Part shown: piece after piece, positions 37,773 through 52,486 of the stretch
How the letters are laid out: the number at the start of each line of letters is the position of its first letter
Position numbering within the stretch: the stretch's first letter is position 1
Notes under the pieces: generated by a model
Told to the model about the DNA's origin: nothing
Seen by the model: only the letters and a program-made list of their open reading frames with translations
Database searches by the model: none
Made by a program: the position numbers and the translations under genes
Sequence record: MT612989.1
Strand: one strand, 5' to 3'
DNA: 64,000 nt

Positions 37773-38039
37773 ATGTCACAACAAACTGCTGAACAAGTAA
37801 TCGAACAGAAAGACGCACAAATCAAAGATCTTAAAGTGCGTACCTTTGACCTACAAGAGACTCTTCAAGAAGAGCGCAATTCTTTTGGTCAGTTCGTGGG
37901 TGTACTAGCTCAACTACTCGATTTCGATCAGACGCAAGCAAGTTCTCTACAGAACTACGTTGACGAAATCGCAATTCTAACCGGTAAAGCTGAACGTCCT
38001 GCTGAAGGCGACGGCGAACAAGAAAAAGACGCTGAATAA
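37773..38039 (+). CDS. gp57A: Tail fibre assembly chaperone
   Basis: 88 aa coiled coil, LKVRTFDLQE; beside genes 1 and 57B. Confidence 0.75.
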   Translation: MSQQTAEQVIEQKDAQIKDLKVRTFDLQETLQEERNSFGQFVGVLAQLLDFDQTQASSLQNYVDEIAILTGKAERPAEGDGEQEKDAE

Positions 38040-38494
38040 TGAAACTATCTAAGTTCCTTGAAAGTCAGGGAACTTACGTTGGTATTAGATTAGACGAGGC
38101 GAGTAAGCAAGAGTTAGTTCGATTGCAGAAAACGCTTCGTCTAAAAAATCCGTTAGAACCAGATAAATTTCACGTGACTGTGCTTTATAGTCGTAAGCAA
38201 ATTGATGTACCTGTTGTCGATACCACTTTCGTTGCTACTGTTGAACATATCGACTGTTGGAAAACGCAAGACGGCAAATATGCAGTTGTTGCTAAGATGG
38301 TATGTCCAGAACTTGTAGAACGTCACGATGATCTTATCTCTATCGGTGGTACTCACGACTACCCTGACTATACCCCTCACGTTACGTTGTCTTATGACGA
38401 CGCGATCACACCTATGCCCGTCAACGCTGAAGTTCGGCTTGTTGATGAATATCTTGAACCACTTGATTTAAATTGGGTTGATAGTAATGACTGA
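38039..38494 (+). CDS. gp57B: 2H phosphoesterase, gp57B/Acb1 anti-CBASS nuclease family
   Basis: Two HxT motifs (FHVTVLYSR, PHVTLSY), GGTHDYPDYTPH, syntenic with 57A. Confidence 0.88.
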   Translation: MKLSKFLESQGTYVGIRLDEASKQELVRLQKTLRLKNPLEPDKFHVTVLYSRKQIDVPVVDTTFVATVEHIDCWKTQDGKYAVVAKMVCPELVERHDDLISIGGTHDYPDYTPHVTLSYDDAITPMPVNAEVRLVDEYLEPLDLNWVDSND

Positions 38495-39144: not shown

Positions 39145-39159
39145 CGAGAGTACATTGGT

Positions 39160-39282
39160 CGAGTGTTGGTGTAGTGGCAGCACACGTAGCATACTGTAAT
39201 CAGACATGATTATATTCAGCAACCAATTTACGCATATCATAGGGAGATCGTGGGAACGGTTCGATTCCGTTACACTCGACCA
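39160..39282 (+). ncRNA. tRNA-like RNA A with enlarged anticodon arm carrying the CWGCA motif
   Basis: Acceptor CGAGTGT/ACACTCG-A-CCA, D arm, T arm AACGG-TTCGATT-CCGTT; motif G39208, CAGCAA 39217. Confidence 0.8.
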
Positions 39283-39315: not shown

Positions 39316-39471
39316 TTGATTGTATATCTTCTCGCACTAGTATTCATCGTCCTCTTTGCCTTGGACATTGAAGAAGAAAAGGTGCGCATTCATACTTTTG
39401 CGCTAATCACATGCGAACGGGTCATTCATCCCGTAATTAAAGCGCACGATTCCAGATTGTGTTTTGATTAG
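39316..39471 (+). CDS. Possible small membrane protein (51 aa, TTG start)
   Basis: GAGG RBS, N-terminal hydrophobic run LIVYLLALVFIVLFAL. Confidence 0.4.
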   Translation: MIVYLLALVFIVLFALDIEEEKVRIHTFALITCERVIHPVIKAHDSRLCFD

Positions 39472-39541
39472 CTAAGGCAAATATAACTAGAGGATTTTTG
39501 GTGCTTGTGGTTAATCACAAGCACTCTCAAGAACATATTGA

Positions 39542-39663
39542 GCAGGGTTGGTGTAGTGGCTAGCACACGTAGCATAAACGCAAGCTGTTAAGTTTGTATT
39601 CTGCAATCAATTTAGCATATCATTTCCAAGATCGTGACGCAGGTTCGAATCCTGCACCCTGCT
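39542..39663 (+). ncRNA. tRNA-like RNA B (paralogue of A)
   Basis: Acceptor GCAGGGT/ACCCTGC, T arm GCAGG-TTCGAAT-CCTGC, no encoded CCA; motif G39592, CTGCAA 39601. Confidence 0.8.
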
Positions 39664-39681
39664 CAATATGTTTTTACATTG

Positions 39682-39794
39682 GTGAAGTTAGTTCAGTTGG
39701 TTAGAATGCCGGCCAAAAAAACGAAGTCTGATAAGATTTCATTCTGCATTCACATGCACGCCGGAGGTCGCAGGTTCGAGTCCTGCACTTCACC
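39682..39794 (+). ncRNA. tRNA-like RNA C (tRNA-Asp-like body, anticodon replaced by motif insert)
   Basis: GTTCAGTTGGTTAGAATGCCGGCC...CACGCCGGAGGTCGCAGGTTCGAGTCC; motif G39735, CTGCAT 39744. Confidence 0.8.
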
Positions 39795-39804
39795 TTCAAA
39801 TTCT

Positions 39805-39929
39805 GGAGAGTTAGCTCAGTCTGGTAGAGCAAAAGAATGTTAAAGAATACTGACAAGCATTCATGCTGCAAACCTTAATAACTAGGTAAATCTTTTTGTC
39901 ACGTGGTTCAAATCCCGTACTCTCCACCA
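39805..39929 (+). ncRNA. tRNA-like RNA D with motif insert
   Basis: GGAGAGT/ACTCTCC-A-CCA, canonical D arm, AAAGA/TCTTT stem; motif G39857, CTGCAA 39866. Confidence 0.8.
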
Positions 39930-39943
39930 ATTTTCGAGGGTTT

Positions 39944-40312
39944 ATGAATAAGTTTAATGACATAAATGACGAACTTGATTGTATATTGCATCGTTGTGAG
40001 ATTGTAAAGCGCAATCTTCGAAAATATTGTACATTTGCTGTTGAAATGCAGTATAGACTTATGATAAACTTCATTGGCATGGGTTGCTATCAACAAGTTC
40101 TGCCGATATTAGACAATCTAAATTATCACCCTGATACAAGTCAGTTTGATAATATTGAGATTATGCAAACTATAAAAGAATTGATGAAATGTGCAGATAA
40201 GCTCGATTTGCTGCATCAACAAGACGCATTTCATCAAATTAAATCGACTGCTCGTATTACAGAAGAAGCAAACATCTTCGCTGCGAAAGTTGGTCGATTT
40301 CTAGAGAAATGA
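39944..40312 (+). CDS. Hypothetical protein (122 aa)
   Basis: GAGGG RBS and ATG 39944; the longer track ORF overlaps RNA D. Confidence 0.75.
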   Translation: MNKFNDINDELDCILHRCEIVKRNLRKYCTFAVEMQYRLMINFIGMGCYQQVLPILDNLNYHPDTSQFDNIEIMQTIKELMKCADKLDLLHQQDAFHQIKSTARITEEANIFAAKVGRFLEK

Positions 40313-40313
40313 T

Positions 40314-40391
40314 GGCCCTATAGCTCAACACGGTTAGAGCAACCGACTCATAATCGGTAGGTTACAGGTTCGAGTCCTGTTGGGGTCACCA
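40314..40391 (+). tRNA. tRNA CAT, Ile2-like (or Met)
   Basis: Cloverleaf, loop CTCATAA, GGCCC acceptor resembling ileX, CCA. Confidence 0.85.
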
Positions 40392-40411
40392 AAATAAATT
40401 GAAAAAAGTTG

Positions 40412-40440
40412 TTGACAGACGTTTCATCAACGTGTAGTAT
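40412..40440 (+). promoter_or_regulatory. Early promoter
   Basis: A tract, TTGACA-17-TAGTAT. Confidence 0.8.
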
Positions 40441-40470
40441 ACACATTATCAACTACACGAGGAAAACATT

Positions 40471-40701
40471 ATGTCACATAAATTGCTAGTTATCACATCA
40501 ATGCACGGTTGCTACGTCGATTACGATTTCAGAACTGAAATGTTTGACAGATACATGTGTGATGTTGTGATTCCGAACGACTCTGTTGTTTTGTACTCGG
40601 GTACAGTTTCAATAGATGAAATTCGAGCAGTTGCGAACGAATGTTACGCTGACATCAAGATTGAAGAAGTCAGTGATGATGTTTTTGACAGCTATCTTTA
40701 A
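40471..40701 (+). CDS. Hypothetical protein (76 aa)
   Basis: GAGG RBS, downstream of promoter. Confidence 0.75.
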   Translation: MSHKLLVITSMHGCYVDYDFRTEMFDRYMCDVVIPNDSVVLYSGTVSIDEIRAVANECYADIKIEEVSDDVFDSYL

Positions 40702-40705
40702 AAAT

Positions 40706-40945
40706 GCCGCTAACTGGCGTACAATACACAGTGTATTCCCAACATTAGTGCAGACGTAGGCTCGCAACCTACGTTGGTACCGAATCACTGGGACCGAGTA
40801 GAAAGTGCATGTGAGATGTCGAAGTCTTGTATGTAGAAATAACGCTCGGCTGCTCTGAAATGCTGATTAGCTCTTACTTCGAAACTCTAATTGGGTGGAA
40901 GAGGTGTTGTGTTTGACGTGTGTTCGATTCACACGAGCGGCGCCA
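40706..40945 (+). ncRNA. 240-nt RNA with tRNA-like ends (tmRNA-like topology)
   Basis: GCCGCT/AGCGGC acceptor, G-CCA end, T arm GTGTG-TTCGATT-CACAC, ACAATAC/GTGTTGT closing helix. Confidence 0.65.
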
Positions 40946-40958
40946 AGAGGAAATTATA

Positions 40959-41480
40959 ATGAAACCATTGAAGTTCGTTGAGGCGTTCTCTAAAGAAGAA
41001 CGTGCTGCTATGACGATTGAAGAACGTAGCAGACTTCGTAAAATATATAACGAACGCTATCAAGAGTATGTTGATAAGTACATCAATGTATTCACTCGAA
41101 AAGACTTTCGAAGAGAGCGTTGCTGGGTTATTCTTGCACGATGTAAAAAGACTGGTGAAATCATCGGTCGAATTGAAAATAGTTTTAGTATGGGATGGTC
41201 TAAAGAACGTGTTCGTGTTATTCGACCGTATCTAAACGGTAATTTCACGGGCGATGATCGCTTCTCTAAAGCTGAGTACAACAAAGCGTGTGCTGAGTAC
41301 ATAACTCATCATGAGAAACAAGTAAAGTCTCTCAGAGAAGCTTACAAAGACACTCACGACGTTTTCTTATCTCGTGTGGGTAGTAAGAACTGTCCTGTTT
41401 CTATTGATTGGGATACGTATTACAGTAAAAAAGACAAACGAAACTTTGAATATCGAAATTTGAAATTCAAAGTTAAATAA
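40959..41480 (+). CDS. Hypothetical basic protein (173 aa)
   Basis: GAGG RBS, ATG 40959. Confidence 0.75.
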   Translation: MKPLKFVEAFSKEERAAMTIEERSRLRKIYNERYQEYVDKYINVFTRKDFRRERCWVILARCKKTGEIIGRIENSFSMGWSKERVRVIRPYLNGNFTGDDRFSKAEYNKACAEYITHHEKQVKSLREAYKDTHDVFLSRVGSKNCPVSIDWDTYYSKKDKRNFEYRNLKFKVK

Positions 41481-41485
41481 TTCAT

Positions 41486-41601
41486 AGTCGGGTAGCTCAG
41501 TGGTAGAGCACGAAGAATGATACTGACAAGTATCGCTCCAGCACTCCTTCAATTGCCTGTTAAGCACGTGGTCGCTGGTTCGAATCCAGCCCCGACTACC
41601 A
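41486..41601 (+). ncRNA. tRNA-like RNA E: GTT anticodon arm interrupted by 41-nt motif insert
   Basis: AGTCGGG/CCCGACT-A-CCA; CG[insert]TGC-CTGTTAA-GCACG; motif G41530, CAGCAC 41539. Confidence 0.8.
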
Positions 41602-41627
41602 TTTTTGATAAACTAGTGAGGTATAAC

Positions 41628-41864
41628 ATGAGCGGAACATTTAATATCAACAAAACGTTACTGACTCCGAAACAATTGCGCAATCTAACAGATGAGCGTC
41701 TGAATGAATATCGCAAGTCGTTTCGTAAGCCTCTTGGGTTTTTGAAGCATCTGAACGATACAAACGAATTGACTTCAGATCAGCACAAGAAATTCGTTGA
41801 GCTTAATAAGCACTACAACGACGAAATTCTTGCTGAAATGAACAAGCGAAAACACTTAGGTTAA
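41628..41864 (+). CDS. Hypothetical protein (78 aa)
   Basis: GAGG RBS, ATG 41628; the track start lies inside RNA E. Confidence 0.7.
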   Translation: MSGTFNINKTLLTPKQLRNLTDERLNEYRKSFRKPLGFLKHLNDTNELTSDQHKKFVELNKHYNDEILAEMNKRKHLG

Positions 41865-41991
41865 TAAAATCGCAGAAAATTGATAATTTTTTTCAATTTT
41901 CTGCGAAAATACCGCAAATCGTCAGATTTAGTGTTATAAGTACTATAAAGAAACAAAACAAATTTTAATTTTTATTTCAAGAGAGCATTCA

Positions 41992-42105
41992 ATGACGCAT
42001 TCGTTTACACATTCATCTGAGACATTACGCAGCGATTTTCTGCGCTCAGAATTCGTGTATCTAGCGAATCCGATTGCGAACCAGAAGTGGGATACCCTCT
42101 TGTAG
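41992..42105 (+). CDS. Possible 37-aa peptide MTHSFTHSSETLRS...
   Basis: AGAGAG RBS-like, followed by terminator. Confidence 0.35.
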   Translation: MTHSFTHSSETLRSDFLRSEFVYLANPIANQKWDTLL

Positions 42106-42134
42106 TCCGATAGTATAACATAGAAGTATACTTG

Positions 42135-42158
42135 AGGACGCAAATAGCGTCCTTTTTT
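42135..42158 (+). terminator. Rho-independent terminator
   Basis: AGGACGC/GCGTCCT then T tract. Confidence 0.8.
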
Positions 42159-42235
42159 ATGGGCGTAAGAAAGTTAAGAAATTTTGTTTAACGTACTTTG
42201 ATTACAGAGTATGATAAACAAAGTTAAAGAACAAA

Positions 42236-44333: not shown

Positions 44334-44408
44334 GGGTGTGTAACTCAGAGGCAGAGTAGTCGGCTGTTAACCGACAAGTCGAGATTTCGAAATTCTCCAC
44401 GCCCGCCA
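44334..44408 (+). tRNA. tRNA-Asn(GTT)
   Basis: GTCGG-CTGTTAA-CCGAC, G-CCA. Confidence 0.9.
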
Positions 44409-44729: not shown

Positions 44730-44845
44730 AAGAGTGTTTTCAGCAAACAATTTACTAATATTCTTATCGGAAAGAAATGTTTAGGGTTCGATTCCCTTTC
44801 AGTGTTGGTATCACTGGTCTGGACGACGCTAGTAATAACACTCAG
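44730..44845 (+). ncRNA. RNA G: motif stem at termini enclosing a T arm and closed acceptor-like hairpin (Y-RNA/YrlA-like)
   Basis: AA-GAGTGT-TTT-CAGCAA ... AGGG-TTCGATT-CCCT, TCAGTG/CACTGG ... ACACTC-AG. Confidence 0.65.
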
Positions 44846-45166: not shown

Positions 45167-45241
45167 GGGCCGTTAGCTTAATTGGGAAAGCGCCTCACTT
45201 GCAATGAGGAAGATAGGGTTCGACTCCCTGCGTGTCCACCA
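45167..45241 (+). tRNA. tRNA-Ala(TGC), irregular acceptor stem
   Basis: CCTCA-CTTGCAA-TGAGG, G3-U70 retained, CCA. Confidence 0.8.
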
Positions 45242-48284: not shown

Positions 48285-48330
48285 GGGAGATATGTGGTCA
48301 AGGCAATAGGTTCGATTCCTGTGTCTCCCG
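48285..48330 (+). ncRNA. Mini tRNA-like element lacking anticodon arm
   Basis: GGGAGAT/GTCTCCC stem with T arm ATAGG-TTCGATT-CCTGT. Confidence 0.45.
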
Positions 48331-49039: not shown

Positions 49040-49387
49040 ATGTTTGTAATGATTGATGATATGCGTGATATCGATAAGTTCACTGCGCCTGAAATTTCCG
49101 CAGATCAGAAGCTTGTTTTGCGTACGTATGAAGACGGTATGAAATTCGTCAAACATACGAATCTTACAGATATTACTTTATTCATGGACAATGATCTAGG
49201 CGGTGCTCTTGGTCATGAGGGATATGATATTCTCTCTCATGCAATTGATCATCGTAACTTCCCACGCACAGTTGTTCTAGTAACGAGTAACCCTGTTGCT
49301 CACTCTAAGATGACTATGATGTTGATGAGTACACTTCAATATAAACGTGTGGGTTCTATCTTTATGAGGCAAGATACATGCACTTAA
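49040..49387 (+). CDS. Cyclic-phosphate-processing receiver-like domain protein
   Basis: IDDMR, MDNDLG..EGYDIL, VTSNPVAHSKM pattern of that family (recognised from memory). Confidence 0.7.
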   Translation: MFVMIDDMRDIDKFTAPEISADQKLVLRTYEDGMKFVKHTNLTDITLFMDNDLGGALGHEGYDILSHAIDHRNFPRTVVLVTSNPVAHSKMTMMLMSTLQYKRVGSIFMRQDTCT

Positions 49388-50437: not shown

Positions 50438-50482
50438 AAGACATTTTACAGCAATTAATTATGAGGAAATGAACAATGTCAG
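50438..50482 (+). promoter_or_regulatory. Leader hairpin with CWGCA motif enclosing RBS and AUG of Ro60-like gene
   Basis: AA-GACATT-TTA-CAGCAA..GAGG..AATGTC-AG; ATG 50476 lies in the 3' strand. Confidence 0.75.
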
Positions 50483-51912
50483 TATTTATGAACGCAATGC
50501 AAACAAACGATTCACGCACAGCAAACGGTGCAGTTACTCACAGCACTTCAGGTAACGAGTGTCTAAACTTGTTCTTCGGTATTGCTGCTATGCGTGGCAA
50601 CGATCAGTCTAAAACACTGTTCGGTCGTGCGTTTGCAGAAAACCCAGAACTAGCGACTCGCATTCTTTTGTGGTCTCGTGATGTTCGAGGTGGTGCGGGT
50701 GAACGTGGTACTTTCCGTACTCTATTCACTAAACTTTGTAATGAACAGCCTGACGTAGCTCGTGCTGTAATGTCGAAAATTCCAGAACTAGGTCGTTACG
50801 ATGACTTGATTTCTGCTTTCGGTACACGTCTTGAACAAGATGCGATCACAATGTGGTCGAACGCAATTGTCAATGACAAGAATGGTCTTGCTGCGAAGTG
50901 GTTCCCACGTGAAAACAGCAAAAACGGTCATGTGTTCAAGCGCACAATCAAGTCTCTTGGCGTAACTGCGAAGCAGTGGCGTAAGATTCTGTCGCTTCTG
51001 TCTGACACTGTTGAGCAGAAGATGTGTGCGCAAAAATGGGATGCAATCGACTTCGGTAAGTTGCCTTCTGTAGCGTCTGCTCGTTATCAACAAGCATTCG
51101 GTCGTAACGCTTCAACACGTTACACAAACTACATCGAGTCACTTCAAAAAGGTGAAGCGAAGATCAACGCTGGCGCATTGTTCCCATACGATGTCGTTAA
51201 GAGCGTTAGTCACGGTAATGCGTCTGTAGCGAACGAGCAATGGAAAGCTCTGCCAAACTACATGGAAGGTTCTGATGAACGCATCATCCCTGTTGTTGAC
51301 GTGTCTGGCTCTATGAGCACGCCAATTAACGCAGGTACAGACCGTTCAGGTGTGACTTGTAAGCAAGTTGCAATGTCTCTTGGGATTTATGTTGCTGAAC
51401 GCAATGAAGGCATCTTCAAAGATCAGTTCATTTCGTTCTCAAGCGACCCGCACTTCCACCAGTTGCGCGGCTCTTCATTGAAAGAGCGTCTTGATAACAT
51501 GAATCGTTCAGGCGAAGACATGAGTACGAACATCGGTAAGTGCTTTGATGTTCTGCTAGAGCGTGCGAAGCGTGCAAATCTTTCACAAGAAGATATGCCA
51601 ACCAAGTTGCTTATCATGAGTGACATGGAATTCGATCAAGCAAACACTGGTGGTGGTTGGTACGGTCGCGGTGAACCTGCGAACTTCGATGCAATCAAAG
51701 CCAAGTACGCACGTGCTGGTTATGAAATGCCACAACTGGTCTTCTGGAACATTCGTGGTCGTCTTGGCAACGTTCCGGTTAAAGCTGGTGAAGCGGGTAC
51801 TGCACTGGTATCTGGTTGTAGCCCATCTATCTTGACTTCACTGTTGGGTGGTGAGCTTGAGCCAATCAAGATCATGATGAAAACTGTAGGCGTCGAACGC
51901 TACAGCTTTTAA
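50476..51912 (+). CDS. Ro60-like TROVE plus vWA protein (DUF2828-type)
   Basis: TANGA, RDVRGGAGER, PELGRYDDL, LAAKWFPRE; MIDAS VVDVSGSM; SDMEFD; VFWNI. Confidence 0.85.
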   Translation: MSVFMNAMQTNDSRTANGAVTHSTSGNECLNLFFGIAAMRGNDQSKTLFGRAFAENPELATRILLWSRDVRGGAGERGTFRTLFTKLCNEQPDVARAVMSKIPELGRYDDLISAFGTRLEQDAITMWSNAIVNDKNGLAAKWFPRENSKNGHVFKRTIKSLGVTAKQWRKILSLLSDTVEQKMCAQKWDAIDFGKLPSVASARYQQAFGRNASTRYTNYIESLQKGEAKINAGALFPYDVVKSVSHGNASVANEQWKALPNYMEGSDERIIPVVDVSGSMSTPINAGTDRSGVTCKQVAMSLGIYVAERNEGIFKDQFISFSSDPHFHQLRGSSLKERLDNMNRSGEDMSTNIGKCFDVLLERAKRANLSQEDMPTKLLIMSDMEFDQANTGGGWYGRGEPANFDAIKAKYARAGYEMPQLVFWNIRGRLGNVPVKAGEAGTALVSGCSPSILTSLLGGELEPIKIMMKTVGVERYSF

Positions 51913-51955: not shown

Positions 51956-52486
51956 GTGAAAATGTTCGATTGGGAAGCGATAGAAACAGCTATCAATAAC
52001 AGTCATCCAAATAGCACAATATACGTTGGGTGTGATAGTAAGCGTAAAAGTGACATGATTAGTTACGCGACTGTGATCATAATTCATCTTGAAGGTAGTA
52101 AAGGTGCTCAAGTGTTTAAAGCAGTTGAGACTGAACCTGCATACTTATCATGTAAAGATGGTATCAGAAGTCGATTGATGAATGAAGTATACAAAGCGGG
52201 TGAAACTGCACTAATGGTTAAGCCAATGTGCGGTACTAGAGGCTTTGAAGTTCACGTTGACATCAACCCTGACCCTACACACAAATCTCACGTTGCCTAT
52301 AACGAAGCTAAAGGTACTATATTGGGATATGTTGGTCAAGAGCCCGTGTTCAAACCTGATGCGTTTGCTGCGTCTTGTGCTGCTGATTACGACGCAGTTC
52401 GAAGAGCAGATAAAATCGCTAAACGAAAAGAACTTAGACGAGCTAAACGAAAAGCAAAGAAACAAAAAACAAAAGGGCGCAAATAG
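51956..52486 (+). CDS. RNase H-like protein, YkuK family
   Basis: IYVGCDS, RLMNEV, EVHVDIN, KPDAFAASCAAD. Confidence 0.85.
   Translation: MKMFDWEAIETAINNSHPNSTIYVGCDSKRKSDMISYATVIIIHLEGSKGAQVFKAVETEPAYLSCKDGIRSRLMNEVYKAGETALMVKPMCGTRGFEVHVDINPDPTHKSHVAYNEAKGTILGYVGQEPVFKPDAFAASCAADYDAVRRADKIAKRKELRRAKRKAKKQKTKGRK

Follow-up and report, generated by a model that had tools for sequence, protein, structure and literature searches.

The 64,000-nucleotide (nt) stretch of sequence record MT612989.1 analyzed here (the window) is 100% identical to Vibrio phage vB_ValM_R11Z, a T4-like phage of the KVP40 type (Schizotequatrovirus). Five tRNA-like genes, RNAs A to E, lie on the same strand as a gene for a Ro60-like protein, which is located just past a tRNA cluster and 8.9 kb downstream of RNA E (Table 1). 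We focus on RNA E, a tRNA-Asn-like gene whose anticodon stem is split by a 41-nt insert, and on the small RNA module that the insert carries. An earlier note, made from the sequence alone, had described the split arm; the connection to Ro60-like proteins and their Y RNAs, which is the main result of the present analysis, was absent from it.

The body of RNA E (positions 41486 to 41598) comprises a 7-bp acceptor stem (AGTCGGG/CCCGACT), a standard D arm (GCTC-AGTGGTA-GAGC) followed by A26, the anticodon arm, a variable loop (TGGTC), and a standard T arm (GCTGG-TTCGAAT-CCAGC), with CCA encoded at 41599 to 41601. Direct reading of the sequence bore out the anatomy given in the earlier note. Deleting 41513 to 41553 yields exactly CGTGC-CTGTTAA-GCACG, in which a complete 5-bp stem bears an Asn (GUU) loop. 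The sequence GATAC-TGACAA-GTATC-GCTC-CAGCAC lies within the insert, the GCTC spacer between hairpin and CAGCAC occupying 41535 to 41538. The note had also called the A discriminator (A41598) unlike that of Asn tRNAs, and the only ordinary tRNA-Asn compared, at 44334 to 44408 of the window, indeed has G. Discriminator G73 is an identity element for asparaginyl-tRNA synthetase. Among RNA E homologs, the window phage and KVP40 have A at this position, VS1 and QD01 have G, and any of A, G, or C occurs in other phages.

The Rfam tRNA model covers 41486 to 41598 by looping out 54 nt in the anticodon arm, and ARAGORN makes no tRNA call for RNA E. A canonical tRNA-Asn has an uninterrupted 5-bp anticodon stem, whereas the 5′ strand of this stem is broken by 41 nt in RNA E. 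The locus is labeled tRNA-Pseudo-3 in the KVP40 record (GenBank AY283928) and tRNA-Ile, tRNA-Val, or nothing in other phage records.

Table 1. Positions of RNA E, its parts, the related RNAs, and genes of the Ro60-like neighborhood in the window
Feature	Coordinates	Strand	Description
RNA A, tRNA-like	39157..39281	+	Long acceptor stem; split after CG; module hairpin and CAGCAA (39217-39222); loop ATAGGGA (39247-39253); KVP40 and 6E35.1a equivalents parsed
RNA B, tRNA-like	39540..39665	+	Scaffold as RNA A; hairpin 39580-39597 (loop TGTTAA), CTGCAA 39601-39606
RNA C, tRNA-like	39682..39794	+	Module fills anticodon loop; hairpin 39723-39740, CTGCA 39744-39748; Rfam tRNA model 53.7 bits; KVP40 tRNA-Pseudo-5
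RNA D, tRNA-like	39805..39929	+	ATGTTAA, then module; hairpin 39845-39862, CTGCAA 39866-39871; CCA encoded; Rfam tRNA model 50.1 bits; KVP40 tRNA-Pseudo-4
RNA E, tRNA-Asn-like	41486..41601	+	113 nt plus encoded CCA; Rfam tRNA model 49.8 bits; identical in KVP40-type phages
RNA E, anticodon-stem nt 27-28	41511..41512	+	C41511 and G41512, 5′ of insert; pair with C41567 and G41568
RNA E, 41-nt insert (module arm)	41513..41553	+	Between nt 28 and 29, 5′ strand of anticodon stem
RNA E, module hairpin	41519..41534	+	GATAC (41519-41523), TGACAA (41524-41529), GTATC (41530-41534)
RNA E, CAGCAC	41539..41544	+	RNA E version of the conserved C(A/U)GCA(A) motif
RNA E, lower anticodon stem and loop	41554..41568	+	TGC (from T41554), loop CTGTTAA (41557-41563), GCACG (41564-41568); GUU anticodon
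cREC_REC gene	49040..49387	+	Cyclic-phosphate-processing receiver (Pfam)
Ro60-like protein gene	50476..51912	+	478 amino acids; Pfam DUF2828 and DUF7788 (helical repeats and vWA domain); KVP40.0300
RNaseH_like (PF04308) gene	51956..52486	+	Pfam; directly after Ro60-like gene; pairing repeated in L158

Conservation of RNA E and its insert module

RNA E is identical over 116/116 nt in 23 phage records, including those of KVP40, phi-pp2, and ValKK3, while the flanking DNA (1.2 kb around RNA E) is ∼83% identical between phages sharing this sequence. The insert is conserved to the same degree as the exons, and no allele lacking it was found among 48 related phage records. In the 86%-identical 6E35.1a/D482 group, the acceptor stem is altered at most positions (AGTCGGG/CCCGACT to GACCGAT/ATCGGTC), yet it remains paired. 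The split anticodon arm is unchanged in this group, and its TGC strand, loop, and 3′ strand (41554 to 41568) are invariant in all RNA E homologs; a random split 5-mer would pair at 5/5 positions with a probability of ∼0.007 per split position. Variation was seen in the loop of the module hairpin, which is TGACAA, TGTCAA, or TGATAA among relatives, and in the ACGAAG at 41510 to 41515. The whole of RNA E is under strong purifying selection.

A recent origin of RNA E by copying of the phage's own tRNA-Asn was considered and rejected, the exons being only 67% like the tRNA-Asn at 44334 and other tRNAs being equally close. RNA E belongs to a separate lineage common to other phages.

The same split was found in unrelated phages. 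IMG/VR and metagenomes were scanned with a pattern whose sole fixed elements were the D arm, the CTGTTAA loop, and the T arm, so that the stem halves were free to vary (scan 1). The tRNA-Asn-like genes recovered came from gut phages, jumbo phages (contigs of 359 to 412 kb), and others, with inserts of 38 to 60 nt located after nt 28 or, sometimes, nt 29. Six different split stems occurred in unrelated phages and were complementary every time: CG-TGC:GCACG, CG-CGG:CCGCG, CT-TGG:CCAAG, CT-AGG:CCTAG, AC-GGC:GCCGT, and CG-AGG:CCTCG (the hyphen marks the insertion site). When the anticodon was left free instead (scan 2), the module was found in tRNA-like genes whose loops are the canonical ones of Lys, Thr, Ile, Arg, Ser, and Gly tRNAs, and in other members, including RNAs C and D of the window, the insert fills the anticodon loop. 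The anticodons found outside the Asn-biased searches mostly read ANN codons (Lys, Thr, Ile, Arg-UCU/CCU, and Ser-GCU), in a collection of loci that is itself biased, and the tally also holds non-ANN loops and loops unlike those of tRNAs (AUAGGGA).

The module was defined from ∼42 distinct inserts. It consists of a hairpin of 5 to 8 bp, a spacer of 1 to 4 nt, the motif C(A/U)GCA(A), and an A/U-rich tail; the hairpin sequence is free to differ among the inserts, with pairing kept. We used MAFFT to align 34 RNAs that had been chosen by a parser that demanded acceptor and anticodon pairing. Motif positions C54, G56, and C57 are invariant in this alignment and A58 is nearly so, and the insert hairpin is 81% paired with compensatory changes at 5/5 pairs. 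For the stems on which the RNAs were preselected, the acceptor stem is 100% paired, pairs 27:43 and 28:42 are 95.6% paired, and pairs 30:40 and 31:39 are held in 34/34 and 33/34 RNAs, respectively, with compensatory changes in the four anticodon-stem pairs. Because of this preselection, it is the free-stem pattern scans that provide independent support for these two helices. A closing helix (GAA/UUC) proposed for the RNA E insert was rejected, as it is only 41% paired across the family. The module is present in 5/5 of the window RNAs, and the combination of hairpin and motif is recurrent at the same tRNA site in many phages, with many anticodons.

Three side observations concern the insertion site. 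First, two gut-phage loci (L251, 4041 to 4168; L013, 4925 to 5061) have nearly the same backbone and insert, with a CTGTTAA loop in one and a CTTCTAA loop in the other, and a matching variant (L017) differs by one D-loop base and one hairpin-loop base (TGTATA versus TGTGTA). Judged by sequence, the pair looks like a switch of anticodon from GUU to UCU on a fixed scaffold. Second, another insert family, unrelated to the module and without the CAGCAA motif, occurs at nt 28/29 of phage tRNA-like genes from IMG/VR and metagenomes (L023, L044, L241, L262, L305, L316, L318, and L346). The 5′ end of these inserts reads CGAAAA.. or CGTAC.. and the 3′ end ..GGTTATC or ..GAGTTACTT; they may be docking sites for a different protein or true introns. 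Third, scan 1 also drew many archaeal tRNA-Asn genes with inserts of 30 to 37 nt at another position and with another junction pattern. In these archaeal-type genes (L036 to L154, from sediment and aquatic metagenomes), the insert lies just 5′ of the anticodon loop, and a second insert in the T arm is frequent, as is ordinary for archaea. Noncanonical archaeal tRNA introns resemble the phage inserts in being short, lying in the anticodon arm, and leaving exons that restore a perfect stem (PMC4090602), but they follow nt 30 to 32 and end in ...GGCUGA(R)G (bulge-helix-bulge), a pattern that the phage inserts, which carry the CAGCAA module, lack. No splicing endonuclease is known from the hosts of bacterial viruses. 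The archaeal genes are a contrast set unrelated to the phage inserts.

Linkage of the module to a Ro60-like protein gene

Pfam calls DUF2828 and DUF7788, and not TROVE, on the 478-amino-acid protein encoded downstream of RNA E, and its sequence link to Ro60 is marginal (profile search against the PDB, E value of 0.17 to phiLo Ro60). An AlphaFold (AF2) model built from 23 homologs (predicted local distance difference test score of 79, predicted template modeling [TM] score of 0.76) has helices over residues 1 to 260 and an alpha/beta domain over residues 270 to 470. When the PDB was searched with Foldseek, the top five matches were full length and all were Ro60/TROVE structures (9KOP, 9L5Y [two chains], 1YVP, and 9NEP), with E values of 1e-6 to 6e-5 and TM scores of ∼0.5. 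They represent two Thermus phage phiLo Ro60 entries, Xenopus Ro60 with RNAs, and Ro60 with misfolded pre-5S rRNA. The model agrees with the defining architecture of Ro60/TROVE proteins, in which HEAT-like helical repeats form a ring and a vWA domain closes it, and the product of 50476 to 51912 is predicted to have the Ro60 fold. Homologs are encoded in 710 phage records and number >7,400 database proteins, and many of those from phages carry the annotation "Ro-like RNA binding protein." The window gene and a gut-phage copy match with an E value of 1e-91 in tblastn.

The association between gene and module was tested from both directions. In the first test, 80 IMG/VR loci were fetched via the protein alone, and all 6-mers in the 600 nt after the gene were counted without bias. 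CAGCAA was present at 50/79 loci, with 12.5 expected (binomial p of ∼2e-21), and the overlapping words TACAGC, TTCAGC, TTCTGC, and GCAAAC were also enriched. These loci have one to three copies of the motif, placed behind the 5′ strand of a helix. A local hairpin preceding CAGCAA in these free-standing RNAs was considered and rejected, as none was enriched; the motif instead follows the 5′ strand of a longer-range helix. The feature common to all of the RNAs is therefore the end of a helix, a spacer, and CAGCAA, rather than a hairpin as such. In the second test, loci were fetched via the RNA pattern alone, and the gene was sought within the few kilobases fetched. After one misclassified locus was moved, a Ro60-like gene was found near 12/31 module-bearing loci and 0/100 module-free loci (Fisher p of 4e-9). 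The gene was always on the same strand as the module-bearing RNA and mostly adjacent to it, and arrays of three to four long tRNA-like genes directly upstream of it were frequent. In the gut-phage contigs and several others, a few hundred nucleotides separate a split tRNA from an ∼516-amino-acid DUF2828 and DUF7788 (plus vWA) gene downstream of it. No module or tRNA was found within 8 kb of the Lak-B2 homolog of the gene. The module is genomically linked to the Ro60-like gene.

Copies of the motif also occur in RNAs that resemble YrlA, a type of bacterial and phage Y RNA. After the "Ro-like RNA binding protein" gene of mycobacteriophage Clautastrophe, there are three units in which GUGGAC.. 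is followed by 1 to 3 nt, CAGCAA, and, farther on, GUCCAG, and the middle unit encloses a match to the YrlA model (39 bits, E value of 4e-6, under the gathering score). Felixounavirus CL1 has four ...GAAGACCnnnn-CAGCAA units among the tRNA genes after its Ro60-like gene. In one of them, a T arm comes next, then a hairpin, and then a D arm, which by eye is the permuted tRNA-like layout of YrlA; Rfam gave no confirmation for this unit.

The surroundings of the Ro60-like gene suggest a role in RNA repair or counterdefense. In one locus (L156, 5738 to 9216), the gene is accompanied by a kinase (AAA_33; PNK), a HAD_PNKP phosphatase, and T4 RNA ligase 1 (Rnl1). The cREC_REC and RNaseH_like genes of the window may likewise be members of the Ro60-like system. 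Elsewhere, a tmRNA gene directly follows the Ro60-like gene (L233, 2510 to 2876), and in another locus (L174, 7955 to 13287) 13 Rfam tRNA matches, one of them 111 nt long, form a cluster with the Ro60-like gene at its head.

Proposed Y RNA-like partners and alternative readings

Y RNAs, the RNA partners of Ro60, mimic tRNAs and have their genes next to those for Ro60; in YrlA RNAs of bacteria, which are found beside Ro60 genes in 22 phages as well, a tRNA-like domain is joined to a Ro-binding stem (PMC4201824). A phage Ro60 binds phage Y-like RNAs as well as host PNPase (PMC12135203). For a Listeria phage, it was suggested that the abundant noncoding RNAs near a homologous gene are Y RNAs (PMC12282133), and the authors of a study of Felixounavirus Bas63 noted that some "tRNA genes" neighboring its Ro60-like gene may be Y RNAs (10.1101/2024.10.10.617714). 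Under the reading that we favor, and to which we give a modest balance of probability, RNA E and its siblings A to D are nonpermuted, tRNA-shaped, Y RNA-like partners of the phage Ro60-like protein in which the module is retained. The module probably binds the Ro60-like protein. We infer that it is kept in the mature RNA, and the biological role of RNA E is inferred along with it: RNA E would be made and trimmed in the fashion of a tRNA, and its module would dock onto the Ro60-like ring. The tRNA body, with its anticodon arm and CCA, would then form an "adaptor" half comparable to the tRNA-like domain of YrlA and bring the Ro-like protein to tRNA-handling enzymes or tRNA-directed nucleases, the particle being part of a phage RNA repair or counterdefense system.

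RNA E shares several features with YrlA (RF02553). Both are small RNAs that go with a gene of the Ro60 family, have a tRNA-like body with D arm, T arm, and acceptor-like stem (in RNA E, canonical D and T arms and the Rfam tRNA score in Table 1), present the protein module at the position of the anticodon stem, and occur as several differing copies per genome. At the loci of the mycobacteriophage and the Felixounavirus, a YrlA-like tRNA domain in permuted order has the CAGCAA unit at its flank. YrlA lies within 4 kb of a Ro60/TROVE gene (Chen et al. 2014, PMC4201824), whereas RNA E is more distant, although on the same strand; module-bearing tRNAs homologous to RNA E in other phages are directly adjacent to the gene and on its strand. 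Unlike RNA E, YrlA is circularly permuted, ending in the Ro-binding stem, with a loop-closed acceptor stem and no anticodon loop. The two ends of RNA E form an ordinary 7-bp acceptor stem followed by CCA; RNA E also has a complete Asn anticodon arm, and its module is a closed side branch. In engineered "tRNA scaffolds," a foreign RNA replaces the anticodon arm. RNA E resembles such scaffolds in that the tRNA body would be a vehicle for processing and stabilizing an inserted element, and it differs from them in being natural and in keeping the anticodon arm beside the insert.

Several observations weigh against a retained module or a Ro60 partnership of RNA E. By nearest-neighbor folding, unspliced RNA E has an energy of −26.5 kcal/mol with the split arm and −27.8 kcal/mol without it, and the exons alone form a perfect 72-nt cloverleaf at −32.9 kcal/mol. 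The acceptor and anticodon pair counts given above are partly circular owing to the selection by the parser, and canonical, covarying anticodon arms with many anticodons are also expected of real pre-tRNAs. The motif of RNA E is the most deviant copy (CAGCAC, and CCGCAT in the 6E35.1a group), and the Ro-like gene of the window is 8.9 kb away rather than adjacent. The Rfam YrlA model matches neither RNA E nor the arrays of module-bearing tRNAs, and the Ro-site motif of YrlA, GNCGAA(N)G, is absent from RNA E, which has C(A/U)GCA(A) after a helix instead. Finally, in one metatranscriptome run only the generic T arm of RNA E was matched, which is uninformative on splicing; otherwise, RNA searches returned only DNA-type contigs of related phages. 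The earlier note had envisaged a three-way junction that presents an anticodon loop together with a protein site. The protein site has gained in standing, since the insert motif is a signature of RNAs beside the Ro60-like gene and such a gene is present in the window. As for the anticodon loop, covariation shows that both halves of the split stem are kept pairable, but the energies of the unspliced fold give the arm no stability.

The alternative that survives best, which the earlier note had also raised and which we consider unlikely though possible, is that the insert is a removable intron. RNA E would then be a pre-tRNA-Asn from which the 41-nt module is cut at the 28/29 junctions, the exons being rejoined by phage or host enzymes; the Ro60-like protein could possibly guide the reaction, which would yield a functional tRNA-Asn and might release a free small RNA as well. 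The folding energies fit such splicing, the exons alone giving the perfect cloverleaf and the split arm not being favored in the unspliced fold. So do a fixed site with inserts of variable sequence and length (38 to 60 nt), the second insert family at the same site, the canonical 7-mer anticodon loops of many isoacceptors, and the one backbone found with both GUU and UCU. Genes for PNK, HAD phosphatase, Rnl1 ligase, cREC, and RNaseH-like proteins beside the Ro60-like gene would also be in keeping with cutting and rejoining. In addition, "enigmatic," highly conserved introns have been described in megaphage tRNAs (10.1101/356790). Like RNA E, the tRNAs of Lak megaphages are too long for bacterial tRNA finders and have conserved inserts of tens of nucleotides, and Lak-B2 encodes a distant homolog of the Ro60-like protein; unlike that of RNA E, the Lak inserts lie mostly in the anticodon loop, according to the eukaryotic tRNA finder used to place them (10.1101/356790).

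What tells against splicing is that the same module occurs where there is nothing to splice, in free-standing and YrlA-like RNAs, and where it replaces the anticodon loop, as in RNA C, so that excision would leave no tRNA. An insert as conserved as the exons, with no insertless allele in the 48 related records, argues in the same direction, as do the tRNA-Asn genes that the phage already encodes (ARAGORN) and the variable discriminator of the homologs (A, G, or C). No bulge-helix-bulge could be drawn by inspection of RNA E and its 6E35.1a counterpart, for which no dedicated search was run. A search of 39400 to 42000 with Rfam at an E value of ≤1 gave only tRNA matches and one chance YrlA match, with no ribozyme or intron family. 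Group I tRNA introns are >200 nt, have a P1-P9 core, and lie in the anticodon loop, whereas this insert is 41 nt and lies in the stem.

More doubtful, in our view, is that unspliced RNA E serves as a decoy or a shielded tRNA, its exposed or protein-covered anticodon arm soaking up or resisting host nucleases that attack the anticodon or its stem, a use that the earlier note had mentioned as possible. The idea rests on analogy with host defenses: PARIS cuts tRNA-Lys in the anticodon stem at 40/41 (PMC11464382), a site opposite the one where the module is inserted, and OLD is reported to remove the anticodon arm of tRNA (PMC12445682). Intact anticodon arms, mostly of ANN-codon readers outside the Asn-biased searches, would suit such a function. 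Moreover, a Ro60-like protein of a related family, gp130 of Bas63, counters the Ppl defense system (10.1101/2024.10.10.617714). However, the anticodon tally is biased by the way in which loci were collected and includes non-ANN and AUAGGGA loops, and the authors of the Bas63 study propose DNA, rather than tRNA, as the target that Ppl degrades (10.1101/2024.10.10.617714). A decoy function would be compatible with a retained module.

A decaying pseudogene, namely, an old tRNA-Asn broken by a junk insertion and without function, would account for the KVP40 label tRNA-Pseudo-3 and the missing ARAGORN call but is highly improbable and in effect ruled out, because the 116-nt identity persists amid ∼17% divergence of the flanks and the acceptor stem changes are compensated, and the architecture is repeated in unrelated phages.

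With regard to the Y RNA-like partnership, a literature search, which was incomplete and did not cover the phage list of Chen et al. 2014, found no description of the module, of insertion at nt 28/29 in complete tRNAs, or of the KVP40 loci in terms of Ro60 and Y RNAs. The tRNA-embedded architecture and the newly defined module are new to the Y RNA/Ro60 system. The loci look like RNA partners of a very widespread phage Ro60-like protein, and the partnership would have a simple signature, a helix followed by a few nucleotides and C(A/U)GCAA. A complete tRNA can accommodate this signature at a single defined position and still keep its anticodon arm. The annotation of tRNA-Pseudo-3, -4, and -5 of KVP40, which are the same loci, implies decay, whereas conservation and linkage argue for function; these "tRNA pseudogenes," and possibly some tRNA "introns" of large phages, thereby gain a reading at the level of function. 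The role of Ro60-like proteins in phages, the reason why Y RNAs mimic tRNAs, and an action of such particles on tRNA damage in the course of infection become testable questions. We would add one tentative and rather unlikely extension, in which the module-bearing RNAs are working, chargeable "escorted" tRNAs with a Ro60 docking arm that are shielded from nuclease attack, or rapidly repaired after it, or whose arm is removed by protein-guided cutting and rejoining. If this were true, the escorted set would comprise Asn, Lys, Thr, Ile, Arg, and other tRNAs, and the attackers would be host nucleases that cut the anticodon arm; with cutting and rejoining, a bacterial virus would for the first time be seen to have a protein-dependent tRNA splicing system. 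In both versions, the Ro60/Y RNA system would be linked directly to the tRNA arms race between phages and bacteria.

Sibling RNAs and other features of the region

The equivalents of RNAs C and D in KVP40 are located 1.6 kb upstream of the RNA E equivalent. A 32-bit YrlA match across the junction of RNAs C and D spans two neighboring RNAs and is due to chance. At the anticodon position, RNA B has an 8-nt loop (ATTTCCAA). One RNA per array carries a purine-rich AU(A/G)GGGA or UUGGGGA in place of the anticodon loop and has no normal anticodon loop; RNA A (39247 to 39253) and loci L043, L087, L143, L282, and L308 are the carriers. Just upstream of RNAs A to D, a homolog of T4 gp57B (38039 to 38494, + strand) is annotated in one relative as "RNA ligase." It was considered as a candidate tRNA ligase and rejected, since Pfam assigns it to Acb1, an anti-CBASS 2H phosphodiesterase.

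Sites matching the T-arm consensus (GGTTCGANTCC) beyond those in the ARAGORN calls were found at 44785 to 44795, 45167 to 45238, and 48309 to 48319. The site near 45217 is within an Rfam tRNA match of 44.9 bits, and KVP40 has tRNA-Pseudo-1 in the equivalent region. These sites may mark further atypical tRNA-like genes.

In the intergenic region from 41866 to 42235, the noncoding stretch from 41970 to 42126 is matched exactly by a 164-nt metatranscriptome contig and is followed by a terminator-like hairpin at 42134 to 42154. This stretch, which immediately precedes the tRNA cluster, may correspond to an abundant small RNA. Directly upstream of RNA E (at 41471 to 41475), some relatives have ∼334 extra bases, as seen in a contig of run X2 and in two-piece matches in phi-Grn1, XZ1, and ValKK3. 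In the latter three phages, a third hypothetical protein is annotated under the match at this site.

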